A stretch of 64,000 bases of DNA from Basidiobolus meristosporus CBS 931.73 (GCA_002104905.1 MCFE01000090.1:112537-176536), one strand, 5' to 3'; shown: positions 5,736-62,389, numbered from the stretch's first letter. Translations and numbers: made by a program. The notes: a model not told the origin generated them from the letters alone.

Positions 5736-5746
5736 CTGAGTGGGAG

Positions 5747-13520: not shown

Positions 13521-13711
13521 GAAGATTGAATTTTTGCATCTGCCCGGTGTTAAGGAGCAGGCCTTGCGTCAATCTGAAGACAATGAAAGGGCAAAGCAAA
13601 AGACGAGGCAGTGATGTATAGGAGGGAGGATGGAAACAGTTCTCCGAGCATGTTTAATGTGAAATTATGTATACATAAGTAGTGTAATCCTGACGATCCA
13701 AAAGTTTCCAG

Positions 13712-39599: not shown

Positions 39600-42500
39600 A
39601 TGTCCTTGAATTACGAGACTACTGTTGACGAACTCTCGGGTGATCTAGCAAACATTCATTTTGAATGTGAAAATCCATGTCTTGATGTTACCAAATGCAA
39701 GGCTCAAATTCGTGCGGCTGACAAGGAGAGAGCCATCTCACTGCTCCAAAGATTGACCGAATGCAGGGACTCGGAGAAACTGGCCCAAATTGTTGAAGAA
39801 GTGGCTGCTTTTGTTGACAACGTTGGGGTTGTCGAGGCAGTCGTCACCTTTGGAATGATTGACCTTCTGAAGGTAGCCGCCCAAAATAAAAAATCCCCCG
39901 TTGATCGTGAGGGTGCTCTGTTAGTTTACGCTGCTCTGGCCAAACGCCTTGGCCATTCGATCGAGCCTTACCTCGTCTCTGAACTACCAATTATTCTTGG
40001 CGGGTTCTCCGACAAATCTACTACTGTGCGCGAGGCAGCCAGAATAGCAGGTACTGCGCTAATGGCGCTGCCATGCGAGCATGCCGTCCCAGCACTGTTG
40101 CCAGTGCTTTTTGATGCGCTAGAAAATGGAAAATGGCAAACGAAGCTCGGAAGTCTGGCTCTTATCAGTGAGCTCTCTCGAGGTTCACCTGAACAGGTCC
40201 AAGCTTGCCTTCCCGATATTATTCCACGCGTTTCCGAAATAATGTGGGATACAAAGCCTGAAGTTCAGGCTGCCGCTAAGGCAACCATGAGAAGTGTGTG
40301 CGATGTCGTGGGAAATCCCGATATCGAGCCTTCTCTGGATTCTCTAATTGGCTGTATTGCCGCTCCTGAAAATGTTCCAGAATGTATTCACCAGTTAGCC
40401 GCAACAACATTTGTCACCCAGGTCGAGGCCCCAGCACTTGCCATCATGACTCCCCTTCTCACTAGAGGCTTAGCTGAACGGAACCCCGCGGTTCAGCGTC
40501 AAACTGCAGTAATCATCGAGAATATGTGTAAATTGGTGGAGAATCCAGCTGATGCAGCCCAGTTTTTACCAAAACTTCTCCCCGGACTTGACAGGATTAT
40601 CGAGATCGGCGCTAACCCGGAGTTACGTAGTGTAGCCGAACGGGCACGCTCTACCCTAGTCCGTGTTGGTGGCGCAAATGCTGACATTTTGGAGCCTTTA
40701 CTCGACACGACAGAAGCCACTGAAGTCTTGAAGATTCTGAACAAGGAGATCACCGATGTCTCCTCCTCTATCCTCGAAACATCACAGATCGCCCTCCATT
40801 ACATTGCCACTATGTGTGCAGGCCTTGTAAACAGACGCAGCTTCGAGGTTGTGGATTGGGATATTTGTATCGTTCCTTATCTTGCTCCATTGATTTCGCA
40901 AAAGAATGCCGATATAGTCTGTGCCAATACCTTGAAATTCTATGTCGAGCGGGATGAGAAGCGTTCCAAAGATGCGGCAGCGGCTGCAGAGGATGAGGAG
41001 GGCGAGGAGCTTTGCGATTGCGAATTCTCGCTGGCATATGGTGGCATGATTCTACTGAATAACACCCGGCTAAAGTTGCGCCGTGGACAGCGTTATGGCC
41101 TTTGCGGTCCCAATGGTGTGGGGAAATCCACGCTCATGCGATCCATAGCTGAAGGAAAGCTGAACGGATTCCCATCACCGGACGAGCTTAAAACAGTGTT
41201 CGTGGAGCACAATCTGCAAGCTGAGGAGGCAGAACTAGGGGTGCGTGAATTCATAGCGAAGGATCAGAATCTCTCTCATGTTTCTGAAGAAGAAATCAAA
41301 ACCATGCTGCTAAGTGTTGGTTTCACTGAGGACATGCAAATCATGGCGGTTTCGTCCCTTTCTGGAGGCTGGAAGATGAAATTGGAATTGGCACGTGCGA
41401 TGTTAATGCAAGCGGATATACTGCTTCTCGACGAGCCTACCAATCATTTGGATGTTGCCAACGTTGCGTGGCTGGTGAATTATCTCAACAGTCTCTCCAG
41501 CGTTACCAGCATCATAGTCTCTCATGATTCCGGCTTCCTGGATAGTGTGTGCACAAACATCATACACTATGAAAGTCGAAAATTAAAGAATTACAAGGGG
41601 AATCTCTCGGAGTTTGTGAAGCATTATCCAGAGGCCAAATCGTATTATCAATTGGCGAGCGTCACCCACAAATTCAAACTACCCGTGCCTGGTATATTGG
41701 ACGGCGTCAAATCGAAAGGCAAGGCTATCCTGAAGATGACAAACATTGGCTACACCTATCCAGGTGCCAGTAGAGTAGCTTTAAGGGATATATCCGTGCA
41801 GTGCTCTCTAAATTCTCGCGTTGCTGTGATCGGGCCTAATGGTGCTGGTAAGTCCACCATGATCAAGGTCCTAACGGGGGAAATTGTTCCTGACTGCGGC
41901 GAAATTAAGAAGCACCCTAACCTGCGGGTCGCCTACGTAGCTCAGCATGCCTTCCATCATGTTGAGCAGCATCTCGATATCACACCGAACGAATACATCC
42001 GCTGGCGCTACCAAAACGGTGAGGATCGAGAGTCGTTGGTGAAAGCCGATCGTCAAATTACCGACGAAGAGCTGAAACAAATGAACACTATCGTCTTGTG
42101 GGAAGGGGAAAAGCTCAAAGTAGAGGGTTTGTACGGACGTCGCAAGGCAGGCCGTTCTTCAGAGTACGAGGTTCAATGGGTCGGCAAGAGCCATCAAGAA
42201 AATGGCTGGGTACCTCGTGAGGACTTGGAAAAATGGGGATTCAAAAAAATGTTGGATGCATACGATGCCAAGGAGGCCGCTCTTGCCGGCGCCTGGACTA
42301 GGCAGCTGACCGCGAAGGAAGTGGAAAAGCATTTGGGGGATCTTGGGTTGGATGCAGAATTCGCTACTCACAGTCGAATCCGTGGATTATCAGGTGGTCA
42401 GAAAGTAAAGGTGGTGATTGCGGCAGCAATGTGGCTGAATCCACACCTGCTTGTCTTGGATGAGCCTACCAACTACCTGGATCGCGATTCTCTGGGTGCC

Positions 42501-42821
42501 TTGGCAGAAGCCATTAAGGATTTCGAGGGAGGGGTCGTGATGATTTCCCATCATACTGAATTCACTGAATCCCTATGCACCGAAACTTGGAAGGTTGATG
42601 CCGGTACCGTAACTCTGGAAGGAAACGACTATACTTCCAATTCTGCCGAGAAAATTCAAGCCCGTGATGAAGCGGAGACTAAAATCGATGCTTTTGGAAA
42701 CGTATCCAAAGTCTCCTCCCAGAAGAAGCTCACCCGAAAGGAGCTCAAACAAAAGCAAAAGCGGAGGGCCCAAAGAATTGCCAATGGGGAAGAAGTAAGC
42801 AGCGATGAAGACATCGCATAA
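39600..42821 (+). CDS. YEF3: translation elongation factor 3 family ABC ATPase, single exon
   Basis: HEAT repeats, two ABC domains (GPNGVGKS/LSGGWKMK/LLLDEPTNHLD; GPNGAGKS/LSGGQKVK/LVLDEPTNYLD), chromodomain insert, basic tail ending SSDED. Confidence 0.93.
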   Translation: MSLNYETTVDELSGDLANIHFECENPCLDVTKCKAQIRAADKERAISLLQRLTECRDSEKLAQIVEEVAAFVDNVGVVEAVVTFGMIDLLKVAAQNKKSPVDREGALLVYAALAKRLGHSIEPYLVSELPIILGGFSDKSTTVREAARIAGTALMALPCEHAVPALLPVLFDALENGKWQTKLGSLALISELSRGSPEQVQACLPDIIPRVSEIMWDTKPEVQAAAKATMRSVCDVVGNPDIEPSLDSLIGCIAAPENVPECIHQLAATTFVTQVEAPALAIMTPLLTRGLAERNPAVQRQTAVIIENMCKLVENPADAAQFLPKLLPGLDRIIEIGANPELRSVAERARSTLVRVGGANADILEPLLDTTEATEVLKILNKEITDVSSSILETSQIALHYIATMCAGLVNRRSFEVVDWDICIVPYLAPLISQKNADIVCANTLKFYVERDEKRSKDAAAAAEDEEGEELCDCEFSLAYGGMILLNNTRLKLRRGQRYGLCGPNGVGKSTLMRSIAEGKLNGFPSPDELKTVFVEHNLQAEEAELGVREFIAKDQNLSHVSEEEIKTMLLSVGFTEDMQIMAVSSLSGGWKMKLELARAMLMQADILLLDEPTNHLDVANVAWLVNYLNSLSSVTSIIVSHDSGFLDSVCTNIIHYESRKLKNYKGNLSEFVKHYPEAKSYYQLASVTHKFKLPVPGILDGVKSKGKAILKMTNIGYTYPGASRVALRDISVQCSLNSRVAVIGPNGAGKSTMIKVLTGEIVPDCGEIKKHPNLRVAYVAQHAFHHVEQHLDITPNEYIRWRYQNGEDRESLVKADRQITDEELKQMNTIVLWEGEKLKVEGLYGRRKAGRSSEYEVQWVGKSHQENGWVPREDLEKWGFKKMLDAYDAKEAALAGAWTRQLTAKEVEKHLGDLGLDAEFATHSRIRGLSGGQKVKVVIAAAMWLNPHLLVLDEPTNYLDRDSLGALAEAIKDFEGGVVMISHHTEFTESLCTETWKVDAGTVTLEGNDYTSNSAEKIQARDEAETKIDAFGNVSKVSSQKKLTRKELKQKQKRRAQRIANGEEVSSDEDIA

Positions 42822-42898: not shown

Positions 42899-43226
42899 AT
42901 CTTATCGTTGTAAAAGGTCAGGTTGATCCACTCAGACCTTCTAAGCAAGATTTGTGACGTAATTTCGATGGAGGTGTCCCTGTTTCCTATCAACATAGTA
43001 GGATTCTCCCGATGTCTATTCGAACCCTTCCAATCTAAGCATAAATGAACGGTCGCTTGCCAAGAAAGTTAGTGGCGATTATATTTGCTGAATTCCAGAC
43101 AATATCTGATTCAAACCTGCAAGAATGGATGGCAAGTATTCCACGAGTCAAAATAGCCACCGAAGTATCATTAGCATGACAGTACTAAGATATATAGTGC
43201 TATCATTAGCCACTCAAGCGTGTAAT

Positions 43227-43781
43227 ATGGATAGTCACATTGTCCTCCTCATAATCTGCAGCGTCTTCCTTGGGATATTGTGCGTTCCCGCCGCCATCCG
43301 ATATGCCCGTAGTCGATGGGCTGTAAATCTCCTATTGCTAATCATCGGCTCTATTCTAGGGATCGTCGGCGCCATTCTAACAAGGAATCAGCCTAACACC
43401 GGTCTAATTCTTCGAGAGGTCTCTTATGGCCTATTTCTTGCCATCGCAGTTATATTGCTAATAATCACAGTGAGCTACACCTTCTACACCCCATATAAGC
43501 GCGTCAACTCATCACTATGGATCGCTGGATTCTGTAGCGCGCTCATTCTAGTGAAGTCGATCTCCAGACTAGTAAATCTCTTAACCACTGGTACTCCCTC
43601 ATCCACCAACGATCCAGTGGAGGGCCTCAGAATGCTTACTTCATACATGAACGACTTCCCAGCATTTATCATATGCGATCCATTGATGGAATGGCTGACA
43701 ACAAATGTTCTGTTAAGCGTTAATCTGAAGGAGCACTTTGTGCATCCGGTTGAAAAAGCCGATATTCTTCAGCAGGTATGA
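43227..43781 (+). CDS. uncharacterised multi-pass membrane protein (possibly a truncated RTA1-like gene)
   Basis: 4-5 hydrophobic segments; family assignment is only a resemblance. Confidence 0.45.
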   Translation: MDSHIVLLIICSVFLGILCVPAAIRYARSRWAVNLLLLIIGSILGIVGAILTRNQPNTGLILREVSYGLFLAIAVILLIITVSYTFYTPYKRVNSSLWIAGFCSALILVKSISRLVNLLTTGTPSSTNDPVEGLRMLTSYMNDFPAFIICDPLMEWLTTNVLLSVNLKEHFVHPVEKADILQQV

Positions 43782-44281
43782 GATGTGAGCCCCTTAATGA
43801 TCATAGGTCAGATTGGACAAGCCTAACGTAAATTACCTAAGTGAAATTTTCCACAGTAAACGTGCCACAATATTGCCATTTATAATCAAAATGCTGTGGA
43901 TCTGTAGGTTTGAGGGTATAAATTTGGGTCAAGAAGCCTATGATGCCCGAGTGTATTGCCAACCGAAGATTTTATTACGCTGGAACATTGTTTACTCAGA
44001 TTCTCCAAATGCCTGATTGAGAAAATATTGTGAGGTGAGACATGAACCGAGTATAATATGATGAAGATCACTTCGAACACTGGTCTCTTGCTTGTGTATA
44101 TAGCCTGCTCCTGGCCATTCCCGACTCTATGGAACGAGTCCTTGCTGCCTATATGGCTATATGCAAAGAGGAGAGTAATGAAGGTGGTCTCAGCATCTCT
44201 TCCCCAGAACACAGTATAAATACGTGCACTTTGGTTGTTGGATATCATCAACTACTACTTCTGGATAAGTACACTCCAAAA

Positions 44282-44977
44282 ATGAACTCATTCCTTTGCC
44301 TGCTGGTTCTCGCGCTCTGCCTCACTGCGACTGTGGTGGATACCCTGCCATTGCACAACGTTAGTCGACCTAGTCCTGATTTTGCAGCAGCTGTCAATGC
44401 AGCTAAAGCTCACACACTCATGAAGAAGGACAAATACTCGCATGGGAGTGGTACGAATAACTATGATAATGGGAAAGACTACAACAACGGCAGCAAAAGT
44501 TACAGCAATGGAAACGGAAATAGCAAGAGCAATGGGGACGAGAGTAGCTCTGGTATCGGTAGCTCAGGTAGCAATAGAAGCAGTAGTAGCGGTAGCAATA
44601 GCCAGAGCACTACCTCCTCCAAGGGTACACTGCAATTCCGGTTCAACAATGGGCAGTGCACTGACTGGGCCGATGCTCGCTACGCACAGCTGACAGGCCA
44701 TCACGTAGCATGGTCGGGTGATGCACTAACCTGGACCTCCTCCGCCAGAAACACTGCTGGCTGGGCAGTTTCGAGTCAGCCCAAAGCCCCCTCCATCATT
44801 GTCATCCAGCCTGGGAATCAAGGTGTCGGCAGTGATGGCCACGTTGCAGTGGTTGAGAGGATTGAATCTGATGGTGAGGTGTACACCAGCAACTACAATT
44901 ACAACGGAGGCCCCTATGTCAAAACCTATGTGACCTTCAAGACAGGCAATGGGGTTAGCTTCATTTGGCATGACTGA
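44282..44977 (+). CDS. secreted CHAP-domain amidase/peptidase, type A copy 1
   Basis: Signal peptide, N/S/G-rich linker, GQCTDW catalytic Cys, GHVAVVE catalytic His; TATAAATA at 44215. Confidence 0.9.
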   Translation: MNSFLCLLVLALCLTATVVDTLPLHNVSRPSPDFAAAVNAAKAHTLMKKDKYSHGSGTNNYDNGKDYNNGSKSYSNGNGNSKSNGDESSSGIGSSGSNRSSSSGSNSQSTTSSKGTLQFRFNNGQCTDWADARYAQLTGHHVAWSGDALTWTSSARNTAGWAVSSQPKAPSIIVIQPGNQGVGSDGHVAVVERIESDGEVYTSNYNYNGGPYVKTYVTFKTGNGVSFIWHD

Positions 44978-45734
44978 TTCATCACTTTGCTTAATTTGGC
45001 ACAACCGACTGAACGGGTATTTCATTAGCTGGCTAATAAAGTACAGATATGGTTCAAAGCAACTTGGATCTAGATCGAACGGGGATTGGCTAATGAATGG
45101 TGGCTGTACAGTTCTTTCAGTCATACTCGACAATTACGAAAGGGTTGCTTACCCCATGATCAATGGTTTCAATATTCCCTAAGCGTAACATTCGCATCTA
45201 GTAGTAGGCTCGGAGAAACCATAGATCCGGTATAAAGGCCACCGTCCAGATTTAACGACACGCTTGTTTGCAAGGATTACTCCTTAAGGGGATATCGGTA
45301 TATATTTTCTGCATACCAGATACACCACTAATTCAACGTCAAAGCTATTTGGAATGGTTTCCTCCATGTGATTAGCGGATAGAGATGTCCGTTCACAGAT
45401 TGTCTACTACTGGAGTTGCGCACAATTTGTACCATATCCCTTGAAATAAAAGTGACTTCGTATTCATCTTCAATCATGACAGGCCTGTTCAATATAGTAG
45501 TAGTGAGTCAGCTTCGAAAACTGAAGGTCGTCAGTTCACCCGCGGCGCTTGATAATATATTCTGTTTATAGTGCAGTTAATATTCATCAGTGATATATGA
45601 ACTGCTTAAAAGGCCATACAAATATAGCTACTAATCGCAAAATAGAATCTTGCGGAAAAACGTGATGGAATGGTGCATCACTTATTTATTTATTGGGGTA
45701 TTTTCTATTGGGTATCTGAGCTGGACCTCTTCTC

Positions 45735-46280
45735 CTATTCATACCAGATGAAGGACACTCCTTCGCCAGGCCAGAAGTTAACATATGTGGTGATGTAGGG
45801 ACCGCCGCGTCCATTCTCAACATAGTTCCAATTGCTGGTGTAAACACTTCCGTCGTCATTGATGCTCTCGACGACCGCGACATGGCCATAGGAGTCGCAA
45901 CCCTGATATCCAGGCTGGATGGCAATGATCGAAGGAACTCGTGGCTCGCTGGAGACAACCCAGCCTTCGGTGTTTTCAGCGCTTGCTGGCCACGTCTTGG
46001 CATTCCCCCACCACTGAGTGTGATGACAGGTGAGCTGGTAATAACGAGCATCTGCCCAATCGGTGCATTGACCATTATCGAAGCGAAATTGCAGTGAGCA
46101 TGCATTGTAGAGCTCGGATAGACCAGCGAGCTGAGCATGTGATCCAGATGTCTCGGTAGCGTTTGATGAGCCTGAGGTGGTGCTTGGTGTGGTCGAGGTG
46201 GGAAGCGCTTGGACAGCCAGACTTAGAAGACCAACGGCAGCGACAACAGCACCCGAAAGAAAGGAAGAGATTTTGACCAT
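45735..46280 (-). CDS. secreted CHAP-domain amidase/peptidase, type B copy 1
   Basis: Signal peptide MVKISSFL...VQA, S/T linker, GQCTDW, YGHVAVVE. Confidence 0.9.
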   Translation of the reverse strand: MVKISSFLSGAVVAAVGLLSLAVQALPTSTTPSTTSGSSNATETSGSHAQLAGLSELYNACSLQFRFDNGQCTDWADARYYQLTCHHTQWWGNAKTWPASAENTEGWVVSSEPRVPSIIAIQPGYQGCDSYGHVAVVESINDDGSVYTSNWNYVENGRGGPYITTYVNFWPGEGVSFIWYE

Positions 46281-47546
46281 ATTGTACTATTGAGTGTTTT
46301 GAACGTGCTGAATTCATGTCACGAAGCTCGTAATATATAGCTGAGGAGATCCGAGGAAGGTCGATCCAACGAATAACAGATCACATCGCGCTCACTATTC
46401 CAGGCTAGGATTTAACTGGGCTATCCATAACAAGTGGCATTTGGAATTCGATTCCTACCATCGAGTTAAAGCTCAGTAAGAAATTTCCAAAACCCCCAAT
46501 CCAATCAATCTGGATCTTGCTTACCTTTGCAGATCGAATTGTACTTCAAGTTATTCACCATATATGGAGACCGCAAGTTGGTCACAGATTGGTTTAGTAA
46601 TCCTCGATGAAGTTTGACTACTGCCATGTTTGGTCATGGAAGTCAATTTGGCACGCCCCTAGATCTACATTTCCGATTAGGGATTAGTCTATCATCTCAG
46701 TGCGCAGAGTCAGTTTTTTGCTTTAGTTTTAGAAGATCAGGAAGGTTTCTTGTTAGTAGAGTGTCCAATTCTCGAAGATTCAAGGACCCCGCCTACCGTA
46801 GTGCGAACACGGAATATCGAATTCAAGTCTAGACTCTGTCAATATAGGCCTACGTAGATCGTGAAATATCAGATCCTGAGATTATTGACTTTCATCTAAA
46901 ATAGGTGCGGAGATGGCGGATTTTTTTGATCGGTTACTTTCGTTTTATCACTATCTTTATCCAATTGTTTTGTGTTGAAAAAGCTTTGATAGAATCCTCT
47001 ATGTTTGAACCATATGTTTGTATCGGTTTCGGAACAAGTGTGATTCCATGTACTACATTCCATTGCTGGCTAATGTATACGTTGACCCATACGGTAGACA
47101 CGATTTGGAGCAGCCACGAAACTACAATTGTTACAGAGTAAACCCGTAATATCAAACCATAATACAAGCACTACGTCTTTACCCTCTAAAGTGTATGCAT
47201 CTTTCACTCGTATAATATTAAGGCTAGAGGGGCCTTTGTTGCAAACTCCATAATTCCTGCTGCTAAGAGTAAGTAAATATCCGATATCTATAACTAGTCT
47301 CCTAAATGCAAAGACTGAGTTAATCAGGTTGATGTAAATATGGCAACAATCACAAATAATCATTACGACTAGCTAGTGCTATATGCATCTCCGAGCAACA
47401 ATGCTACTTGTCAATGTTATAGTATTTCAGTCAAGCGCGATAAACGCATATCAGGCAGGTCACACTGGAAAACGAGATAGAGTGGTGTTTTACTTATTTA
47501 TTTATTGGGGTATTTTCTATTGGGTATCTGAGCTGGACCTCTTCTC

Positions 47547-48092
47547 CTATTCATACCAGATGAAGGAGACTCCTTCGCCAGGCCAGAAGTTAACATATGT
47601 GGTGATGTAGGGACCGCCGCGTCCATTCTCAACGTAGTTCCAGTTGCTGGTGTAGACACTTCCGTCGTCATTGATGCTCTCGACGACCGCGACATGGCCA
47701 TAGGAGTCGCAACCCTGATATCCAGGCTGGATGACAATGATCGAAGGAACTCGTGGCTCGCTGGAGACAACCCAGCCTTCGGTGTTTTCAGCGCTTGCTG
47801 GCCACGTCTTGGCATTCCCCCACCACTGAGTGTGATGACAGGTGAGCTGGTAATAACGAGCATCTGCCCAATCGGTGCATTGGCCGTTATCGAAGCGAAA
47901 TTGCAGTGAGCATGCATTGTAGAGCTCGGATAGACCAGCGAGCTGAGCATGTGATCCAGATGCCTCGGTAGCGTTTGATGAGCCTGAGGTGGTGCTTGGA
48001 GTGGTCGAGGTGGGAAGCGCTTGGACAGCCAGACTTAGAAGACCAACGGCAGCGACAACAGCGCCCGAAAGAAAGGAAGAGATTTTGACCAT
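47547..48092 (-). CDS. secreted CHAP-domain amidase/peptidase, type B copy 2
   Basis: 181 aa, near-identical to 45735-46280. Confidence 0.9.
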   Translation of the reverse strand: MVKISSFLSGAVVAAVGLLSLAVQALPTSTTPSTTSGSSNATEASGSHAQLAGLSELYNACSLQFRFDNGQCTDWADARYYQLTCHHTQWWGNAKTWPASAENTEGWVVSSEPRVPSIIVIQPGYQGCDSYGHVAVVESINDDGSVYTSNWNYVENGRGGPYITTYVNFWPGEGVSFIWYE

Positions 48093-49412
48093 ATTGTACT
48101 ATTGAGTGTTGTGAACGTGTTGAATCCATGGCACAAAGCTCGTAATAAATAGCTGAGGAGATCTGAGAAAGGTCAATCCAACAAGCAACAAGTCACAGTC
48201 CGCTTACTATTCTGGGCCAGGATTTAACGGAGCTATCCATAACAAGTGGCATTTGGAATTCGATTCCTACCATCGAGTTGAAGCCGAGTAGAAAATTTCT
48301 CAAACCATTAATCCAGTAGATTTGTATCTTACCTTCCAAAATGAAGCATATATCAAGGATGCTGCCATATATGAAAATTCATCTAGTTATAGAATGTCCT
48401 TATTCCTAATTTACTACCACATTAGGCTTGGAAGGCACGTGCTTATATTTCCGATTTCGATTCAGGATCGCTCCAAGTAGTCCACAGTCGTTGAGATTCT
48501 TGATTATGGTACTAATTGTGCTTTTTCTTGACGGAACATTGTAGGAACCTCGCGATGTCTGGATATGTTACACTCTAAAAAGTGCTTTTTTCTCAGTAAT
48601 CAGTTGAAGTCTAGACCCTACCAACATGGTGCTTCGAATTCAGGCTTCAAAGATCCACCCATAGCGTATTTTTAGAGTCAAAAGTCTCGGGTTTTGTTAA
48701 CGAAAGATCGTTAACCTGTAGATTTGGGGGACCGATGCAATGTCATCTTGGTCTTCTGAAGACTCTGCTACTTACCTTCATTCAAATACATTCGTATATC
48801 GGGTAATTAAAATTGGGCCCCTAAGGGTAGCTGATCAATTTATGTAGCAATTCTCCAAACGCCAAAATCTGAAAACAAAAAAGTCGTATTGGTATAAGAA
48901 GAGTCAGAATCAACGAATGCAAGATGCATCACTAAGAGTAGGATTGGGAGGAAGTGGTGGAACCAGCAATGGGAGTATTGATTAGAAGAACAGTTCTAAT
49001 GTGATGGTTGGGGAATAGGGGTAAGGATCTGGAAGCTTATATTAATGTGGGGTGTGTGACGTCCTGAGTAGACTGCTATCAGAAGCGATATTATTACACT
49101 GGAACATTGTTTACTCAGATGCCCTATACGCCTGATGAGAGATTATTGAGAAATGAGACATGAGCTGAGTATGATATGGCGAAAATCTATTTTCATCATA
49201 TGGCACGCTAACTCTGGACTCTTGCCCATGTATGTTGATTGCTCTTCATTCCCGACTCTATGGAACGAGTCCTTGCTGCCTATATGGCTATATGCAAAGA
49301 GAAGAGTAATGAAGGTGGTCTCCGCATCCCTTACCCAGAACACAGTATAAATACGTGCACTTTGGTTGTTGGATATCATCAACTACTACTTCTGGATAAG
49401 TACACTCCAAAA

Positions 49413-50108
49413 ATGAACTCATTCCTTTGCCTGCTGGTCCTCGCACTCTGCCTCACTGCAAATGTGGTGGATACCCTGCCATTGCACGACGTCAGTCGAC
49501 CTAGTCTGGGTCTTGCAGGAGCTGTCGATGCAGCTAAAGCGCACACACTCATGAAGAAGGACAAATACTCGCATGGGAGTGGTACGAATAACTATGGTAA
49601 TGGGAAAGACTACTACAACGGCAGCAAAAGTTACAGCAATGGAAACGGAAATAGCAAGAGCAATGGGGACGAGAATAGCTCTGGTATCGGTAGTTCAGGT
49701 AGCAATGGAAGCAGTAGTAGCGGTAGCAATAGCCAGAGCACTACCTCCTCCAAGGGTACACTGCAATTCCGGTTCAACAATGGGCAGTGCACTGACTGGG
49801 CCGATGCTCGCTACGCACAGCTGTCAGGCCATCATGTAGCATGGTCGGGTGATGCACTAACCTGGACCTCCTCCGCCAGAAATGCTGCTGGCTGGACGGT
49901 TTCGAATCAGCCCAAAGTCCCCTCCATCATTGTCATCCAGCCTGGGAATCAAGGTGTCGGCAGTGATGGCCACGTTGCAGTGGTTGAAAGGATTGAATCT
50001 GATGGTGAGGTGTACACCAGCAACTACAATTACAACGGAGGCCCCTATGTCAAAACCTATGTGACCTTCAAGACAGGCAATGGGGTTAGCTTCATTTGGC
50101 ATGACTGA
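49413..50108 (+). CDS. secreted CHAP-domain amidase/peptidase, type A copy 2
   Basis: Near-identical to 44282-44977; catalytic Cys and His intact. Confidence 0.9.
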   Translation: MNSFLCLLVLALCLTANVVDTLPLHDVSRPSLGLAGAVDAAKAHTLMKKDKYSHGSGTNNYGNGKDYYNGSKSYSNGNGNSKSNGDENSSGIGSSGSNGSSSSGSNSQSTTSSKGTLQFRFNNGQCTDWADARYAQLSGHHVAWSGDALTWTSSARNAAGWTVSNQPKVPSIIVIQPGNQGVGSDGHVAVVERIESDGEVYTSNYNYNGGPYVKTYVTFKTGNGVSFIWHD

Positions 50109-50884
50109 TTCATCACTTTGCTTTATTTGGCACAACCGACTGAACGGGTATTTCATTAGCTGGCTAATAAAGTACAGATATGGTTCAAAGCAACTTGGAT
50201 CTAGATCGAACGGGGATTGGCTAATGAATGGTGGCTGTACAGTTCTTTCAGTCATACTTGACAATTACGAAAGGGTTGCTTACCCCATGATCAATGGTTT
50301 CAATATTCCCTAAGCGTAACATCCGCATCTAGTAGTAGGCTCGGAGAAACCATAGATCCGGTATAAAGGCCACCGTCCAGATTTAACGACACGCTTGTTT
50401 GCAAGGATTACTCCTTAAGGGGATATCGGTATATATTTTCTGCATACCAGATACACCACTAATTCAACGTCAAAGCTATTTGGAAATGGTTTCCTCCATG
50501 TGATTAGCGGATAGAGATGTCGTTCACAGATTGTCTACTACTGGAGTTGCGCACAATTTGTACCATATCCCTTGAAATAAAAGTGACTTCGTATTCACCT
50601 TCAATCATGACAGGCCTGTTCAATATAGTAGTAGTGAGTCAGCTTCGAAAACTGAAGGTCGTCAGTTCACCCGCGGCGCTTGATAATATATTCTGTTTAT
50701 AGTGCAGTTAATATTCATCAGTGATATACGTGCATCGAATACTTAAGAGCTGCTTAAAAGGCCATACAAATATAGCTACTAATCGCTAAAATAGAATCTT
50801 GCTGGAAAAACGTGATGGAATGGTACTTCACTTATTTATTTATTGGGGTATTTTCTATTGGGTATCTGAGCTGGACCTCTTCTC

Positions 50885-51430
50885 CTATTCATACCAGATG
50901 AAGGACACTCCTTCGCCAGGCCAGAAGTTAACATATGTGGTGATGTAGGGACCGCCGCGTCCATTCTCAACGTAGTTCCAGTTGCTGGTGTAGACACTTC
51001 CGTCGTCGTTGATGCTCTCGACGACTGCGACGTGGCCATAGGAGTCGCAACCCTGATATCCAGGCTGGATGGCAATGATCGAAGGAACTCGTGGCTCGCT
51101 GGAGACAACCCAGCCTTCGGTGTTTTCAGCGCTTGCTGGCCACGTCTTGGCATTCCCCCACCACTGAGTGTGATGACAGGTGAGCTGGTAATAACGAGCA
51201 TCTGCCCAATCGGTGCATTGGCCGTTATCGAAGCGAAATTGCAGTGAGCATGCATTGTAGAGCTCGGATAGACCAGCGAGCTGAGCATGTGATCCAGATG
51301 TCTCGGTAGCGTTTGATGAGCCTGAGGTGGTGCTTGGAGTGGTCGAGGTGGGAAGCGCTTGGACAGTCAGACTTAGAAGACCAACGGCAGCGACAACAGC
51401 GCCCGAAAGAAAGGAAGAGATTTTGACCAT
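50885..51430 (-). CDS. secreted CHAP-domain amidase/peptidase, type B copy 3
   Basis: 181 aa, intact. Confidence 0.9.
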   Translation of the reverse strand: MVKISSFLSGAVVAAVGLLSLTVQALPTSTTPSTTSGSSNATETSGSHAQLAGLSELYNACSLQFRFDNGQCTDWADARYYQLTCHHTQWWGNAKTWPASAENTEGWVVSSEPRVPSIIAIQPGYQGCDSYGHVAVVESINDDGSVYTSNWNYVENGRGGPYITTYVNFWPGEGVSFIWYE

Positions 51431-52665
51431 ATTGTACTATTGAGTTGTTGTGAACGTGTTGAATCCATGGCACAAAGCTCGTAATATATAGCTGAGGAGA
51501 TCTGAGGAAGGTCAATCCAACAAATACCAGATCACAACGCGCCCACTATTCTAGGCCAGGATTTAACGGGGCTAACCATAACTAGTGGCCTATAGGAATT
51601 CAATTCCTACCATCGAGTTGAAGTTGAGATAGGAAATTTCCAAAATCCCCAGTCAAATCAATCTGGATCTTGCTTACTTCAAGTTATCCACCAGATATGG
51701 AAACCACAAGTTTGTCACAGATTGGTGCAGAAATCCTCGATGAAGATTGACTACTGCCCTATTTGGTCATGGAAGTCAATTTGGCACGCCCCTAGATCTT
51801 CATTTCCGATTAGGGATTAGTCTTTCATCTCAGCGCGCAGTATCAGTTGTTTGCTTTTCGTTATAGAAGATCAGGAAGGTCCCTTGTTAGTAGGGTGACC
51901 AATTCCCGGTGATCGAAGGACCCCACCCACCATAGTGTAAACACGGAATATCGAACTCAAGTCTAGACTCTGTCAATATAGGCCTATGTAGATCTGAATA
52001 TCTGAGATCTGTCATCTAAAATGGGTGCGGAGATGGCGGATTTTTTTGATCGGTTACTTTCGTTTTATCATTATCTTTATCCAATTGTTGTGTGTTGATA
52101 GAGCTTTGATAGGATTCTCCATGCTTGAGCCATATGTGTATTGCGGTTTCGGAACAAGTGTGATTTCATCTATTACATTCTATTGTTGGTTAATGTGTGT
52201 GTTGACCCATACGGTAGTAATGATTTGGAGCAGCCACGAAACTGCAATTGTTACAGAGTAAACCCGTAATATCAAACCATAATATAAGCACTACGTCTTT
52301 ACCCTCTAAAGTGTATACATCTTCTACTCGTATATGTTAAGGCTAGAGGGGCCTTTGTTGTAGACTCCATAATTCCTGCTGCTAAAAGTAAGTAAACATT
52401 AGATATCTATAACGCATCTCTTACATGCGAAGACCGAGTTAATTAACTTGAAGTAAATCTGGTGATAAACACAAATAATAATTACGACTAGCCAGTACTA
52501 TATGCATCTCCGAGCAACAATCCTACTTCTCAATGTTATGATACTTCAGTCAAGCGTGATAAACGCATAGAAGGTAGGTCACACTGGAAAACGAGATAGA
52601 GTGATGTTTCACTTATTTATTTATTGGGGTATTTTCTATTGGGTATCTGAGCTGGACCTCTTCTC

Positions 52666-53211
52666 CTATTCATACCAGATGAAGGACACTCCTTCGCCAG
52701 GCCAGAAGTTAACATATGTGGTGATGTAGGGACCGCCGCGTCCATTCTCAACGTAGTTCCAGTTGCTGGTGTAGACACTTCCGTCGTCGTTGATGCTCTC
52801 GACGACCGCGACATGGCCATAGGAGTCGCAACCCTGATATCCAGGCTGGATGGCAATGATCGAAGGAACTCGTGGCTCGCTGGAGACAACCCAGCCTTCG
52901 GTGTTTTCAGCGCTTGCTGGCCACGTCTTGGCATTCCCCCACCACTGAGTGTGATGACAGGTGAGCTGGTAATAACGAGCATCTGCCCAATCGGTGCATT
53001 GGCCGTTATCGAAGCGAAATTGCAGTGAGCATGCATTGTAGAGCTCGGATAGACCAGCGAGCTGAGCATGTGATCCAGATGCCTCGGTAGCGTTTGATGA
53101 GCCTGAGGTGGTGCTTGGAGTGGTCGAGGTGGGAAGCGCTTGGACAGCCAGACTTAGAAGACCAACGGCAGCGACAACAGCGCCCGAAAGAAAGGAAGAG
53201 ATTTTGACCAT
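52666..53211 (-). CDS. secreted CHAP-domain amidase/peptidase, type B copy 4
   Basis: 181 aa, intact. Confidence 0.9.
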   Translation of the reverse strand: MVKISSFLSGAVVAAVGLLSLAVQALPTSTTPSTTSGSSNATEASGSHAQLAGLSELYNACSLQFRFDNGQCTDWADARYYQLTCHHTQWWGNAKTWPASAENTEGWVVSSEPRVPSIIAIQPGYQGCDSYGHVAVVESINDDGSVYTSNWNYVENGRGGPYITTYVNFWPGEGVSFIWYE

Positions 53212-54941
53212 GTTGTACTATTGAGTTGTTGTGAACGTGTTGAATCCATGGCACAAACCTCGCAATATATAGCTGAGGAGATCTGAGGAAGGCTAACCCA
53301 GCAAACAACAGATCGTAGTCCGCTAACTATTCCAGGCCAGGATTTAACGGGGATAACCATAACCAGTGGCCTTAGGAATTCTATTGCTATCATCCAGTTA
53401 AAGTTGGGCCAACGATTCCTACAGTTCTCAATCGATTCGATGTGGATCTGGCTCACCTTCGCTTATTGGATAGTACATCTGAACACCATATATGGTGGAG
53501 TACATGGTTCTGTATTTTATAATGGAGATATTCAGCCGCCATATTTAGTCATGGTAGTCGATTTGGCACGTCCTTAGATCTGCACTTGCAATTAGGGATG
53601 ATCTCAGTCAGAGGTATATCTGATCTTCTATAAAGAAAGCGAATAATTGTTACTGCGCACCAAGTGATTGTCTAATTCTCAGTACTGCAGTGTAATCACA
53701 TATTAATGAGTTCAAGTCCAGACTGTGTGAGCGTAAGCGTATGTGAAACGTTCATTATAAGCCAATAAGAGGAGCTTAGCTGATAATTTCAACATGCTAC
53801 ATCACTTGTTTCATCATCTCAGCCATTTATTTTGGATCGACAAAGCTTTGATAAGATTCGCCTCACTTGAGCCATGCGCTTCTTGCTGTTGCTGAATCCA
53901 CACAGCTTTATGCATCATATTTCATTGTTGGCTGATGTCCATCTTGACAGGTGAGCTATTTATACTTTTTAGCGATTACATATCCAATATTTTTACAAGA
54001 TAAAACTAAAGTACAATGATTATATCTGTTGATGGGTGCTCGTTGTTTGATCATCATGGCTAAAGAATACTGAAAACAAACAAAGATAGAAAATATTACC
54101 AAGATGTAGGTGCTGTAGCCAAGCCTGCAAAAGGCAAGCAAAGGCCTGAAAAGGTTAGAATCTGTTTGCAAAAACAGCACACAATCAATGAATGCTCTAG
54201 AAAGAGAAGAAGGTACTCCTGAGTTCTACAGTTGGCTCTGTTGGTGTAAGTAACATTTTCACACACCCTATAAGAGAAAAAATATACTTCAAATCTTGAC
54301 ATACTCAATGGCTAATATATATCATTGTTATTGCTGTATCCAAGAGAAAAGTGTAATAAACTCTTGAATTAGTTAACTGAACCTAAGTGATGACTAAGTG
54401 CAGAATCTTAGAATTGTGAAGGGTGACAGAAATATTAGCAGAGAAGTTCTGGTCTAAAATTGGTTTTGTATATAGTTGAGTTGGGCTATAAAGGCAGCAG
54501 AGTTGGCTTGCTATATAGGCTAGGCTTGGTGTTCTTGGGAATACTGGATGTGCTAGGCTTGGGTGAAAACTAGAACAGAATTGTGGAATTCTTGATTTTG
54601 CTGAGCACATTAATTTGTGAGCACACACTAAACCAAAAGGTTCAGTAAACTTTATTTATACTTTTCTGATTGAGTAGACATTAGTAAGTGCCAAGAGATT
54701 GGACTAATTGAAATCTGTTAGGGTGTTGATAGGTGCATAAGATAAATGAAAAATTGCATCATTAATTGGCTGATGTCTTGGCAACTGCTAAGTGGTTGGA
54801 TAAATCTCAGATGACTAATCACTTGGAAAGGCTTAGCAGATCAGTTAAGGACATCATGACCTCATGAAAATTGATCAGGTATAACAGCTAATACAGACTG
54901 TGAGAAGTGATAAATTAAACCATTACAGGGATTAGTTATGT

Positions 54942-56100
54942 TTAGGTTAGGGATATACAGGGGAGACAGTCACCAATGGATGATATTTTATTTCAGTTGA
55001 AACAAAAAAGCCAGTGCTACTGTTGTAGCTTTGATACAAGAGTGTGTAGCTGAGGGGAATTTGTAGGCAAGTTAATAAGGAGAGATCATAGTTCTTCAGT
55101 ACTTAAGACACTGTTCTGTGGGAAGGGGGTAGCAAGAGGGGTAAGAATAATTTGTGAACAACATTGATAAGGGGAATGTGACAAGGATTGATACTCATCA
55201 TCAAGGGAGTGTGCTGTTTCAGATATTGCTGCTAAAGGTCTGTCAAGTACTTCAGGTAGGCCAGCTTGGGTTTCTCTGACTGCAAAATATAATGAGCAAA
55301 CTTCTTGACTTCAGGATACCCAAGTATTGCTTTCCTACAGGAGCCAGGTGTAGTGTGGTGGGTTCTCTTCCAGGCCTTAATCAGTGGATTGTTGCAGTGG
55401 TGAAGTCTGAGATATAATCTGGTTCTAAGGTAGTGAAGTCTGATCTTATAGGGCATAAGCCCAAAAGCACCAAGAATAGCATGTCTGTAGGGGCATTCAG
55501 GCAAATGAGGCACCAAGGTGGTAATAGCACCATACTGCAAACTTGTCAAGCTTAGTGCAGTCTCTAGAAGTAAGAGAGAGAAGTGGTAAGCCAAATTCCA
55601 GGACAGGGAAGACAAACTGCTTGAGTAGAAGGATGGCAGCTGGGAGCAGAAGTTGTAGGAGGTGTAACACCCAGTAGCTTGTGGGGTGCCTGTCTTGCCA
55701 GGATAATTCTCTTCTTCAGGTGTGCTCCAGAGTCTAGTCCAGTAGGAAGGAAAGGAAAGCCAAGATATGTAGCAGAAACCTGAGCAGGTAGAGTGGCAGT
55801 TGTCTCAAGTTGATAGGACAGCCCAAAGGTACTGTCTTTGCAATGGAAAGCTGGAGATTACTCTTCTGCAGATACTGGTGGATGGTCTGGGAGTCTTGTT
55901 GCACATTGGAGGAGAATATTCTGATGTCATCAGCAAAGAGAGTAACCAGGCAGTCAGCTGAGAGATCTTGGAAAGTCAATCAGGAAGATGGCAAGCAGAA
56001 TAGGACCAAGCACAGAGCCTTGAACCACTCCATTAGGAACTGAGAACACAGATGATTGCTCACTTTGGTGCAGAACTTTTGCTTGTGGATCCAGAAACAG
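54942..56100 (-). mobile_element. non-LTR retroelement family X, copy 1; 5'-truncated within RT, degenerate
   Basis: ttaggttaggg at left (3') end; GVPNGVVQGSVLGP and LFADD in broken frames; C-terminus ...LVSKLQQ* at 55017. Confidence 0.85.
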
Positions 56101-56934
56101 AGGGGGGGAGACAGTCACCAACAGGTGAAATCTTTATTTCAGTTGAAACAAACAAGCCAGTGCTACTGTTGTAGCTTTGATACAAGAGTGTGTAGCTGAG
56201 GGGAATTTACAGGTAAGTTAATAAGAAGTGATGATAGTACTTCAGTGCTCAAGACACTGTTCAGTGAGAAGGGGTGTAGCATGTGAGGTAAGAATGACTT
56301 GTGAACAACATTAATGAGGGGAATGTGATAAGGATTGATACTCATCATCAAGGGAGTGTGCTGCTGCAGATATTGCTGCCAAAGGTCTGTCAAGTATTTC
56401 AGGTAGGCCAGCTTGGGTTGTTCTGACTGCAGCATATAATGAGCAAACTTCTTGACTTCAGGATCTCCAAGTATAGTTCTCCAGCAGGAGCCAGGTGTAG
56501 TGTGGTGTGTTCTCTTCCAGGCCTTAATCAGAGGGTTGTTGCAGTGGTGAAGTCTGAGACATAATCTGGTTCTAAGGTAGAGAAGTCTGATCTTATAGGG
56601 CATAAACCCAAAAGCACCAAGAATAGCATGTCTGTAGGGGCATTCAGGCAAATGAGGCACCAAGGAGGTAATGCACCATACTGCAAACTTGTCAAGCTTA
56701 GTGCAGTCTCTAGAAGTAAGAGTGAGAAGTGGTAAGCCAAATTCCAGGAAAGGGAAGGCTAACTGCTTGAGTAGAGAGAGGCAGCTGGGAGCAGAAGTTT
56801 TAGGAGTTGTAACAACCAGTAGCTTGCGGAGTGCCTGTCTTGCCAGGATAATTCTCTTCTTCAGGTGTGCTCCAGAGTCTAGTCCAGTAGGAAGGAAAGG
56901 AAAGCCAAGATATGTAGCAGAAGCCTGAGCAGGT
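56101..56934 (-). mobile_element. non-LTR retroelement family X, copy 2; 5'-truncated
   Basis: Same 3' terminus (ggggagacagtcaccaacaggtgaaatctttattt) and RT C-terminal region as X1 and X3. Confidence 0.85.
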
Positions 56935-57903
56935 AGGGTGTAGGAGTTATAGTAAGGGCTAGGAAATGGTTAGAAGAGCAGGGGGTCTGGGGGACGCAGT
57001 CCCCTGAAGAATAAAAAAGCAGGGGGTTTGGGGGATGCAATCCCCCATACTGCTCCCATACTCTTTAAATTCCCTTTGGATTACTTTTCTCTCATCTTGG
57101 TTCTGGTCCCTTAGGGTTACAATTCCTCCTCCTAACCCTTATCACCCTAACCATAAATATTTTTACCCAACAATTGGCACATTGTCTGCTCATATAATGG
57201 GCATGTCTGGGCCAATATTTATCTCCCTATACTGTCCATATGCTCTGTATAATTCTTGATGACTATTTAATTAATAAATTGTTACTTTTAATGTATATCT
57301 GATAATTAATGGGAATCATCCCAAACTGGCCACAATCCCATATTTTGATAAGCTTCAGGCACCATAAATTGCGTGGCCCTAATATGATAAAAAAATTCAT
57401 GGCCAATACAAATTTTCTGTAACCCAATTGCTTTTACCAAATATAAAGTGTATCCCAAAGTTCAATATATATTATGGCTATGATAGAAACTTTATTTGAC
57501 ACCATTGCAACTACTACTTGTGTTCTATGCGCACATGTATCCTGCGGGAATTGTAAAACTTGGCCACATGGTACAAAAGTGCTTTTATTTTTCATCATGA
57601 TAGTTTTACATGAGTTCCTAACGCACTTTGAAAGTACGCAGTAGCCATACCCCAACAGGTTTTAAGGATGTCCACTAGCTACGTCTACTTGTGTCTAACA
57701 AGAGCCAGCAATCATCAGCCGCGCAATACTGAAATGCTTTTATTTTTCATCATGCTAGTTTTGTATGAATCCCTAACGCACTTTCATAGTGCGCGGTAAC
57801 CATACCCCAACAGGTTTAGGGGAGGGAAAGTCACCAAGTTGGTGAAATCTTTATTTGAGTTAAGAACTAATCTAAGTACAAATAAAGAAGCCAATTAAGA
57901 GGT

Positions 57904-60753
57904 CTAGAACCTCTCTGATAAGTAATCTAATTTATGTTTTGTTTCATCTCTAATGTTTGTTTCAATAAAGTAAAGCTCATCAGGGGTAAATATAAAATTC
58001 AGGGGTTTTGGGGGAAGTACAAATTGTAGATGTTTCTGATCAATATAATCCAAGACTGGAACCCAGCCTGGGATTAGGTGTAGTAGGAAAGGTGTGTGGA
58101 CTTGTAAGTAGCTCTGCCACATAGATCTTAGATGGTCCTGAGCTAGTAGTCTTGGTTTCTCAGCTTTTTGAAGTCTTGAAGCAAGCTCTGTTACTACAGC
58201 AGAGCCAACCAGGGTGTGCCAGCAAGAAGATTTCAGGGAGGAGTTAGATTGAAGCCATTGTTTGATGGAGGGGTTATGTGATTTCTGAAGTTTGACTAGG
58301 AAGGAAGCCTGGAGATAGATCATTCGGATTTGGTATGGGTAGAACCCAAAGGCTCCATTAGTTGCATGGATATAGGGAGATACTGGAAGATAAGGTACCA
58401 AGGATCTGATACACTGATGGAGAAATTTATCCAGGCGGTGAAGTTCTCTGGAGGTTAGGGGTATAATGTGGAGACCAAATTCAAGTACTGGCAGTACATA
58501 CTGCTTCAGGAGTATAGGGATCTTTTGAATTGGAGTGTCTGGAGTGACTACTACCAGAAGCTTTTTGAGAGCCTGTTGGGCAAGATGGATCCTATTATTC
58601 AGGTGGAGCTTTGAGTCAATCCCATGTTGACAAAACGGCAGACCTAGATATATTGCAGTTTGTTGTGGCAGAATGCTAGTGTTCTGTATAGTTGTAGTGC
58701 ATCCAATTGGGACTGTCTTGGAAATTGAGAGTGAGAGGTTGTTGGCAGCCAAGTACTTCTCAATGATGGCAGTGTCTGCTATGGGATTAGGAGTAGCAAT
58801 CTTGATATCATCCGCATAGAGAGTTAGTAGTGGATAGGGAGAGTCTGGTGAGGGGCCTTTTGGAAATAAAGGAAAGTCATGTAGGAATATCACAAATAGT
58901 AAGGGACCTAGAACAGATCCTTGGACTACTCCATTTGGAACCTCATAAGTCTCTGATGTGCAACTTGGATGCAAAATTTTGGCTGAGTTCTCACAAAATA
59001 GAGAACGTACAAGAAGGGTCATTGGTAGTGTGGTAACTGCTAATAGCTTTCTCCAAAGCAGAGCTCTGTCCACAGAGTCAAAGGCTTTAGTAATGTCAAA
59101 CAGAATGGTTGGCAATGAGAATTGAAGTGAATGATCATGGCTTAGCACTACAGCCATATCCAAGGAGAGTTTGGGCAAGAAGCCAAGCTGAGAAGGATGG
59201 AATGGATATAGTTGAGATTGCAAGGATCTTGCTATTATAAGCTCAAAGATTTTCCGGCAGGTTGGTAGGAGTGAAACTGGCCGGTAAGAACCTGGGAGTG
59301 AGTGTTTCCCCTTCCCTTTGTATAAGGGTATTACATTTGCCTGTGACCAGGCCTTTGGGGTAGTCAATTGTTGGGCACAGATAGAGTAGAATGGGAGAAG
59401 TAAGTGACTCATTTTGGAGTAGCACACCCGGAGTAGATTGTAGGTAATCAAGTCATGTCCAGGTGCAGTATTTGCAGGAAGCTTCTTTAAAATTTTCTCC
59501 AGAAGCTTTGCTGAAACCACAATTGGAGATGTTGGACTGCTGGATATGTTACCAGTATGGTAGAAAGGAGGAGTGGGATGCACAGTTGAATCAAAGAATA
59601 TAGGGGCCAGTTTGTCTGGTGATGGTATACTCCTTGCTTGGGGTCTCATGGCTTTGTATACTCTTGATATGGACCTTGTGGTGGCATTCATATTTACTAA
59701 GGGCAAGGTATCCATGATATGAGCCCATAATCTAGTATGCTCAGTGATCTGTAGTGACTTGGAGTAGGAGATTGCGCTTTCCAGGAGGTTCTGTGTTTTT
59801 GGGTTAGGGAAACATAGGTAGCTGGAATTTAAGGCAGAAATGATGGATTTCCATTTAAGTTGGTTTGCAGATGGCTTTTGGTAGGACTTGGTGGGCAGGG
59901 CTAGACAGCCAGTGATTATGATGAAATGCTGGTAAAATAGCCATAATGCATTTATATCATCACAAATCCATGCAGGTAAGCTGGGAAATGCATATTCTGT
60001 AAGCAAGGATAGGTAGTTGGCAAAGTCCTGTGTCTGTGATACTGAAGCTTTGGCTGGCAGGATTGTAAATGGCTGAAGAAGGGTGCCAATTGGTAGGGTT
60101 TTTCTGGCAGAAATGATAATATGTATTGGCTTGTGATCAGATTTCTCTAGTGAACCACAGCTGATATCCTCTGGAATGCTTGTAACCTGGTGGATGTACT
60201 GTAAGGCAGCTGGAGTAGCTGTTACCCAGTCAACACAATGTTGAGCTTGCTGAGTGTTTACAGTGACCAGATGATTTTGTCGGAGGAACTTTGTAAATTG
60301 CTCCTCTCAGGTTCTAAGTCTGGATGAAATAGTGGTGATATTTTCAGGGTGGGGGATATTTATATCTCCCACTACCATACAAGGGATTGATGAGCTGTTG
60401 ATGAATTCTGATGTGGCCAAGAAAATTGCCAGTGTTATGGAGTTAGACAGAGATGGAGGGAGATAGATAATAATGGCTACTATAGTTGGAAGTGTTAGAG
60501 CATAGCAGTAATACTCATAGATGATGGATACATTTGCTGAGGGTGCAAGCTGAGAAGATGAAAGAGCAACAAGTGCCATTGAGTGAGCTGGAAATTTTGG
60601 GTGAGCAGATGAATATGCATTCAGTCTAGAGGGAAGTTTTGGCAACTTAACATCAATTAGTAGGAGCAAGGAATATTCCTTTTTCGGCAAGTTTTCTAAT
60701 TCAGCTACAGTTGGAGTGATGGAGTTGCAATTGAGTAAGAGTATGTTCTGTAG
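57904..60753 (-). CDS. family Y ORF2: APE endonuclease + LINE-type RT, with one in-frame TGA at 60307-60309
   Basis: ILLLNCNS, CMVVGDIN, SDHKP (APE); YRPVSLL, FDITKAFDSV, GVVQGSVLGPLLF, LYADD, YLGLPF (RT); no RNase H or C-terminal Zn finger seen. Confidence 0.88.
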
Positions 60754-61830: not shown

Positions 61831-61842
61831 CAGTGATATTTC

Positions 61843-61860
61843 TTAGGGTTAGGGTTAGGG
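61843..61860 (+). repeat. (TTAGGG)3 telomeric repeat at the Y/Z1 junction
   Basis: ttagggttagggttaggg read directly. Confidence 0.95.
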
Positions 61861-62377: not shown

Positions 62378-62389
62378 TTAGGGTTAGGG
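62378..62389 (+). repeat. (TTAGGG)2 at the Z1/X3 junction
   Basis: ttagggttaggg read directly. Confidence 0.95.

Follow-up and report, generated by a model that had tools for sequence, protein, structure and literature searches.

A duplicated array of bacterial-type CHAP genes in the fungus Basidiobolus meristosporus, a candidate secreted cell-wall hydrolase family related to Ktedonobacteria proteins

Six genes near one end of scaffold MCFE01000090.1 of Basidiobolus meristosporus CBS 931.73 (GCA_002104905.1) encode small proteins built around a CHAP domain. The DNA analysed here, called the window, is the final 64 kb of this scaffold (positions 112,537-176,536; 64,000 nucleotides (nt)), and positions are those of the window unless a locus is named. 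The six genes are probably functional fungal copies of a Ktedonobacteria-type bacterial CHAP hydrolase, which would be secreted and would cut peptidoglycan outside the hypha. That a bacterial cell-wall hydrolase family has been domesticated by early-diverging fungi appears well supported by the comparisons below, and would be similar in kind to cases already known. A wider proposal can be offered only tentatively: one ancient transfer, into a shared ancestor of the Entomophthorales and Basidiobolus, may have given rise to a secreted lytic family, retained and repeatedly re-expanded since, that serves as an extracellular antibacterial arsenal and lets these fungi withstand bacteria in the guts of vertebrates and in the bodies and cadavers of insects. 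New here are the distribution of the family in the Entomophthorales, the limits of its tree and a second, decaying array.

Genes, fold and active site of the array

The array consists of two genes of type A and four of type B. The features are as follows (ORF, open reading frame; aa, amino acids).

44282-44977, + strand: A1, type-A CHAP gene, 231-aa ORF; PF05257 E 1.1e-15
45735-46280, - strand: B1, type-B CHAP gene, 181-aa ORF; PF05257 E 8.6e-17
47547-48092, - strand: B2, type-B CHAP gene, 181-aa ORF; PF05257 E 1.8e-17
49413-50108, + strand: A2, type-A CHAP gene, 231-aa ORF; PF05257 E 4.4e-16
50885-51430, - strand: B3, type-B CHAP gene, 181-aa ORF; identical to database protein P0001
52666-53211, - strand: B4, type-B CHAP gene, 181-aa ORF; PF05257 match
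44116-49246: first copy of a ~5.13-kb unit, A> <B <B (direct-repeat families D1-D12, spacing 5119-5134 nt)
49247-53600, right end approximate: second copy of the ~5.13-kb unit (positions 11521-12552 of locus L081, described below, align up to window position 53599)

All six ORFs are stop-free and uninterrupted, and the public annotation of the scaffold gives each gene as a single exon. A first-pass annotation, made from the sequence alone, had described six intact, intronless genes in the order A> <B <B, twice over, and this is confirmed at the coordinates listed. The ~5.13-kb unit is directly duplicated and, inside each unit, the B gene is doubled at a spacing of ~1.8 kb. When the two units are compared, their A-B spacers are 98.9% identical and their B-B spacers 89%. 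These repeats show that the array is the product of a recent segmental duplication, the newest round in the turnover of the family.

The public model of A1 starts at an internal methionine, Met47 (185 aa; window 44420-44977), and leaves out the signal-like segment. Since the 231-aa ORF is intact and agrees with the model of A2, the annotated start is probably wrong. A second-frame ORF of 150 aa lies over each B gene on the same (-) strand (45686-46138, 47498-47950, 50836-51288 and 52617-53069). These ORFs are most simply a by-product of the conservation of B rather than separate genes.

Each protein has the layout initially proposed for it, a hydrophobic signal-like start (Kyte-Doolittle 15-residue mean 2.3-2.8), a low-complexity linker and a CHAP domain. 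In A1 the domain covers residues ~121-206, after an N/G/S-rich linker. In B1 it covers residues ~68-150 and onward to the C-terminus, after an S/T-rich linker. In a HMMER search with the Pfam CHAP profile PF05257 (MEROPS C51), which had been suggested as a check, all six proteins exceed the gathering cut-off of 26 bits, with scores of 58-64 bits (E 1e-15 to 2e-17). The motifs of the catalytic cysteine (GQCTDW) and histidine (GHVAVVE), also noticed at the outset, are present in all six.

The fold is that of known CHAP enzymes. When the family profile is compared with solved structures, the best match is the CHAP structure 2k3a (E 3e-23), followed by 5t1q, 9eum, PcsB and LysK, and the catalytic residues Cys72 (GQCT) and His133 (GHVAVVE) line up with the pair in 2k3a and 5t1q. 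An AlphaFold model of B2 has a predicted local distance difference test score (pLDDT) of ~90 across residues 60-181, while residues 19-57 are disordered (pLDDT <50). The top Foldseek matches of this model are CHAP peptidoglycan hydrolases of staphylococci, streptococci and their phages (5t1q, 9eum, PcsB and LysK), and all 22 matches in the PDB at E <= 1e-3 are CHAP enzymes or CHAP-bearing assemblies. Model and matches together identify a papain-like alpha+beta fold.

The secreted staphylococcal CHAP hydrolases and phage lysins (2k3a, 5t1q, 9eum, PcsB 4cgk and LysK 4csh) thus resemble the fungal proteins in fold and in their Cys/His site, with E values of 3e-23 to 5e-3 in the profile comparison and 1e-7 to 1e-4 with Foldseek. 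They are, however, only 17-30% identical to them, and many carry SH3b, LysM or amidase partner domains, which the fungal proteins lack. The relay block also differs, TSNWNY here against SEMNY in 2k3a; the change from Glu to Asn is shared with the Ktedonobacteria homologues.

The active site is conserved across the family. Among 46 aligned Basidiobolus rows the catalytic Cys and the catalytic His are each present in 45, and all 46 have Asn152 and either Asn or Asp at position 150 (Asp in seven paralogues, otherwise Asn). The pattern is alike in 15 rows of the Entomophthorales group and in 112 Ktedonobacteria rows.

Two further features concern cysteines. Beyond the catalytic cysteine, three more occur in type B (residues 61, 86 and 128) and none in type A; in a secreted protein they might provide a disulfide. 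One subfamily of Basidiobolus paralogues, encoded elsewhere in the genomes (P0014, P0015, P0018 and P0034), has an additional Cys-rich module with the motif CP.GNGLYCG near the N-terminus, after the signal segment and before the linker, which might serve in binding.

The B copies differ from each other at 3-11 nt (for example, 3 nt between B4 and B2). The differences are mostly synonymous and the ratio of non-synonymous to synonymous substitution rates (dN/dS, Nei-Gojobori) is 0.03-0.31, or 0.03-0.07 when B1 is compared with the other copies, which indicates purifying selection on the B copies. Between A1 and A2 there are 27 nt differences; 16 codon differences are non-synonymous, and most of these fall in the linker.

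Predicted secretion, substrate and role

The N-terminus distinguishes the fungal proteins from their bacterial relatives. In most fungal members it is hydrophobic and ends in a recurrent (Q/E)ALP motif. The 12 Ktedonobacteria homologues examined start instead with a hydrophilic region and have their membrane segment internally, at residues ~55-138, an arrangement not found in the fungal proteins. From this contrast we infer that the fungal CHAP proteins are secreted. The suggestion that the gene had been fitted with a eukaryotic secretion signal therefore fits well, at the level of prediction: a signal-like segment stands where the bacterial N-terminus and anchor would be.

The following scheme would account for these features. 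A bacterial CHAP cell-wall hydrolase, of a type found today almost only in Ktedonobacteria (Chloroflexota), would have been acquired by a fungus, most likely an ancestor common to Basidiobolus and the Entomophthorales. A eukaryotic signal peptide, and a linker that is disordered and probably glycosylated, would have taken the place of its cytoplasmic N-terminus and membrane anchor, so that an enzyme tethered in bacteria would have come to be secreted in free form. The family would then have diversified, with turnover by segmental duplication and decay in repeat-rich regions at scaffold ends. The Cys72-His133-Asn150-Asn152 relay has been kept, and the enzyme may be expected to attack peptidoglycan outside the hypha at its amide or peptide bonds. 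This expectation follows from the active site, the fold, the characterised relatives, the signal-like N-terminus and the purifying selection on B, itself an indirect argument for use, together with the absence of the substrate from the producer. As fungi themselves lack peptidoglycan, only bacteria could be the target, presumably competitors that are killed, or digested as a nutrient source, in the gut, in dung, in soil and on cadavers. Killing and feeding are both predicted roles and cannot be told apart here.

Several observations weigh against a lytic enzyme directed at bacterial walls. The third relay residue is Asn and not Glu as in 2k3a. Pfam recognises no cell-wall-binding or other domain beside CHAP in the six proteins. 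Glutathionylspermidine (Gsp) amidase is among the weaker fold matches, and CHAP domains can act on other amides. Finally, the constraint on A1 and A2 is weaker (dN/dS 0.40).

Some of these observations also fit active secreted enzymes with a use other than killing, such as the salvage of nitrogen and carbon from dead walls or muropeptides, or the cleavage of an amide outside peptidoglycan. The missing binding module and the breadth of CHAP chemistry both suit such a role. In addition, the donor-type proteins, with their membrane anchor, resemble housekeeping autolysins more than weapons, and Basidiobolus lives as a saprobe on dung and gut contents (PMC7466969). We nevertheless consider a non-killing use rather unlikely: the solved relatives nearest in sequence and in fold all hydrolyse peptidoglycan, and several of them lyse cells from the outside (for example, the LysK CHAP domain), and the large lineage-specific expansions and fast turnover at scaffold ends resemble, by analogy, those of effector-type families. 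Feeding and killing are, moreover, not mutually exclusive.

Bacterial cell-wall hydrolases captured by eukaryotes and used against bacteria include Dae2 of ticks, the NlpC/P60 proteins of Trichomonas and the GH25 lysozymes. The concept, which includes the gain of a secretion signal, is the same as that proposed here, but the enzyme family and the donor are different. Descent from Tae, the source of Dae-type effectors, was considered and rejected: the type VI effectors Tse1/Tae appear in Foldseek only at E ~1e-2 and the nearest relatives are Ktedonobacteria CHAP proteins. The closest parallel is the oomycete Saprolegnia parasitica, in which a secreted CHAP family of seven genes has been attributed to bacterial transfer, with no donor stated (PMC3681718). 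This is likewise a duplicated, secreted CHAP family in a eukaryote, but in another eukaryotic kingdom. No Saprolegnia protein is found among the relatives of the Basidiobolus family, and the two are presumably independent acquisitions of different CHAP subfamilies.

Only a handful of cases are known in which eukaryotes turn captured bacterial wall hydrolases on bacteria. The present family would extend these cases to early-diverging fungi, in which CHAP genes form a large family that is actively duplicating, with Ktedonobacteria as an unusual donor; it is common to a gut-associated saprobe and to the behaviour-manipulating insect pathogens Entomophthora and Massospora. An interaction between Basidiobolus and gut bacteria has been raised (PMC10964425, PMC12400927) with no tie to CHAP genes, and the family provides a concrete, testable candidate for it. 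Small lytic enzymes of a single domain might also be obtained from it. A transfer would be unsurprising in kind: in a study of horizontal gene transfer in Basidiobolus, 806 candidates are reported and ~5% of B. meristosporus genes are flagged as bacterial transfers (PMC7466969). The main text of that study and the Entomophthora muscae genome paper (PMC11105155) contain no mention of CHAP or peptidoglycan, and no literature linking CHAP with Basidiobolus, Entomophthora, Massospora or Zoopagomycota was found in the searchable library. Public annotation of the fungal family is automatic, as 'Peptidase C51 domain-containing' only.

Bacterial relatives and fungal distribution

A likeness to CHAP proteins of soil Ktedonobacteria had originally been proposed, and the searches bear this out. 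A word-index search with B (copy B2) returns first ~40 Basidiobolus proteins (B. meristosporus and B. ranarum) and then Ktedonobacteria and soil-metagenome 'surface antigen' proteins with 50-61% identity over the domain. A scan of prokaryotes, using one genome per species (185,579 species), gives 196 related stretches, of which the best 76 loci are all from Ktedonobacteria or Chloroflexota, again at 50-61% identity. An exhaustive HMMER search gives 1074 representatives at E <= 1e-3. Among the best 150 of these, 20 of which were checked by name, the top twelve (>=147 bits) are all Basidiobolus and the next score, 126 bits, belongs to Ktedonobacteria-type proteins. Every prokaryotic match that could be named is from Ktedonobacteria or Chloroflexota, and this subfamily is closer to the fungal proteins than any other bacterial CHAP group.

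The Ktedonobacteria proteins come from many genera, among them Thermogemmatispora, Ktedonobacter, Dictyobacter, Tengunoibacter and Thermosporothrix and are annotated as 'CHAP domain-containing protein' or 'surface antigen'. They share with the fungal proteins the C-terminal CHAP domain (50-61% identical), the catalytic residues and the blocks PSIIV, GHVAVVE, TSN.N and GV.F.W, but are longer, 260-345 aa with an internal anchor against 180-230 aa with a signal-like start and linker. As in the fungi, the genes are often present in several copies: 22 of the 76 loci (for example, L042, L010 and L036) have 2-5 CHAP ORFs within ~6 kb. One metagenomic relative, P0136 (L077 4001-5638), is a fusion of a Ser/Thr kinase with CHAP.

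Close relatives were not found in 50,697 phage records (best ~35% identity) or in the 2.9 million contigs of IMG/VR (mostly 27-40%, with at most 48% over short pieces). A search of PHROGs, made with a phage donor in mind, gives weak lysis-type matches only. Since the viral databases give nothing close, a phage source is neither supported nor excluded. One member of a metagenomic clade with CHAP at the N-terminus, which is important in the tree below, sits among short co-oriented genes that have no Pfam matches.

Within the fungi the family is patchy. B. meristosporus has at least 27 copies and B. ranarum ~21, and members also occur in Entomophthora muscae (at least 13 genes, including a tandem trio) and Massospora cicadina (two). 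In the word-index, profile and exhaustive searches (for the last, 20 of the best 150 representatives checked by name), no eukaryote was named other than these four species. In a first tree, the rows nearest to Basidiobolus were not bacterial but those of E. muscae, M. cicadina and two further sequences. One of these two comes from a metagenome contig that carries a second CHAP gene and an F-box/LRR (leucine-rich repeat) gene, and which from this content looks eukaryotic.

We then used IQ-TREE (107 rows, 124 columns, LG+C20 PMSF), rooting the tree on distant CHAP proteins. The fungi form one group (support 99/93), within which Basidiobolus (100/96) and the Entomophthorales group (100/95) are each united. 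Their sister is the metagenomic N-terminal-CHAP clade (fungi plus clade 95/91) and, in the best tree, the fungal clade is nested within a grade of Ktedonobacteria (supports 93/88 and 95/91). Type A belongs to one Basidiobolus subclade and type B to another (17 and 29 rows). Because each subclade includes both B. meristosporus and B. ranarum, the A/B split is older than the two species. The division into two types and their amplification, as first described, are thus both recovered, in these subclades and in the recent segmental duplication. The closest B. ranarum B-type protein is encoded at a contig end beside a major facilitator superfamily (MFS) transporter gene and a cytochrome P450 gene, not beside the elongation factor gene that adjoins the array in the window.

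The tree itself must be read with several points on the other side. It is built on a short alignment of 124 columns, and the approximately unbiased (AU) test does not reject three arrangements: all bacterial rows as one clade with the fungi as its sister (p 0.32), attachment of the far outgroup at the Entomophthorales branch (p 0.45), and a pairing of the Entomophthorales with the N-terminal-CHAP clade (difference in log-likelihood (delta lnL) 3.6, p 0.47). As these tests are non-significant, the direction of transfer rests mainly on distribution: members from Ktedonobacteria and metagenomes number in the hundreds, while the fungal ones come from three genera. The phylogenetic expectation of the first-pass annotation, nesting within a bacterial clade, is therefore seen in the best tree, while the sister position (p 0.32) is not rejected. 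Its proposal of bacterial acquisition holds in that a bacterial-type CHAP family is linked to fungal genes, but the family is not confined to Basidiobolus. The fungal sequences, including those of Entomophthora and Massospora, group together at 99/93, so a transfer would probably be much older than the genus Basidiobolus. A single old transfer is favoured by these data but not proven.

Alternatively, Basidiobolus and the Entomophthorales could have obtained CHAP separately from related donors, or one fungus from another. The third AU result, in which the Entomophthorales join the N-terminal-CHAP clade to the exclusion of Basidiobolus, leaves room for this. A single old transfer also implies losses, as Conidiobolus and other zygomycetes give no match in any search, and the current NCBI taxonomy places the two lineages in different phyla. 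We regard separate acquisition as unlikely, although by no means negligible, since the best tree unites all fungal rows (99/93) with the two lineages reciprocally monophyletic, both lineages have the signal-plus-linker architecture, and the fungal motif GQCT(D/E)W(A/V)D differs from the GQCTYWAN of the Ktedonobacteria shown.

An ancient vertical gene of eukaryotes or fungi that has been lost nearly everywhere, or a transfer from fungus to bacterium, is very improbable. The unfixed root of the subfamily (p 0.32 and 0.45) would allow either, but only three fungal genera face at least 196 Ktedonobacteria stretches of many genera and hundreds of relatives from metagenomes, the CHAP superfamily as a whole belongs to bacteria and phages, and 50-61% identity between fungi and Ktedonobacteria is too high for the split between prokaryotes and eukaryotes. 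A broad, vertical spread across fungi, which had been named as evidence against acquisition, is not seen: three genera are far from broad.

Fungal linkage, copy turnover and neighbouring features

The array is physically linked to a fungal gene, which lies 1.5 kb upstream and consists of HEAT repeats and two ABC domains.

39600-42821, + strand: translation elongation factor 3 (EF3); Pfam HEAT_EF3_N 1.9e-53, ABC_tran 7.7e-46

EF3 is on the same scaffold in the public assembly too, and Sec24, Pam17 and acetolactate synthase are further fungal genes upstream on MCFE01000090.1. The CHAP genes have a GC content of 0.51-0.54, and of 0.53-0.57 at third codon positions (GC3), inside the range of the neighbouring fungal genes; the spacers between them are ~0.8-1.3 kb long and AT-rich (40% GC). 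Composition is uninformative about transfer, since the CHAP genes, their fungal neighbours and the Ktedonobacteria homologues are all of similar GC. Bacterial contamination or a chimeric assembly can be dismissed as a source of the array, with next to no probability: although the array lies in a repeat-rich scaffold end and a related one halts at a scaffold break, its genes are contiguous with EF3, have long AT-rich spacers, fungal-like GC3 and a eukaryote-type N-terminus, recur in independent assemblies of B. ranarum, E. muscae and M. cicadina and, as a relative, on the metagenome contig with the F-box/LRR gene, and are never more than 61% identical to Ktedonobacteria sequences.

A second array, A> <B <B A>, is found at the opposite end of the scaffold (L081 9658-16541, the first ~6.9 kb of MCFE01000090.1, reversed) and is 94.7% identical to window 45654-50318 over 4.7 kb. 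One of its B genes is intact (13414-13959), the other B and one A are frameshifted, and the remaining A is without its signal region. The scaffold end cuts this array, the assembly breaking inside it. A third array of three co-oriented 179-aa CHAP genes (L087 5284-8658) lies 5-9 kb from the start of MCFE01000074.1; it adjoins a trypsin-family gene and is 74% identical to type B. The decaying four-gene array at the other scaffold end points to birth-and-death turnover of the family by local duplication and decay, preferentially near scaffold ends.

Downstream of the CHAP array, after a gap of 1.7 kb, a retroelement array extends from 54942 to 64000, the end of the scaffold. Within it lie an ORF of 700 aa that encodes an RVT_1 domain (57904-60006, minus strand) and, at the joints, TTAGGG repeats (61843-61860 and 62378-62389). 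As the CHAP array ends 1.7 kb short of these elements, it may be subtelomeric.

Between EF3 and A1 there is a 218-aa ORF (43125-43781, +) with several hydrophobic segments and no Pfam match, where the public assembly has an annotated gene of 184 aa. At the other end of the window, positions 1-10000 are AT-rich (GC 0.35-0.39 compared with ~0.5 in the following 20 kb) with a strong positive AT skew, and several ORFs of 215-266 aa lie on the + strand between 1622 and 7709.

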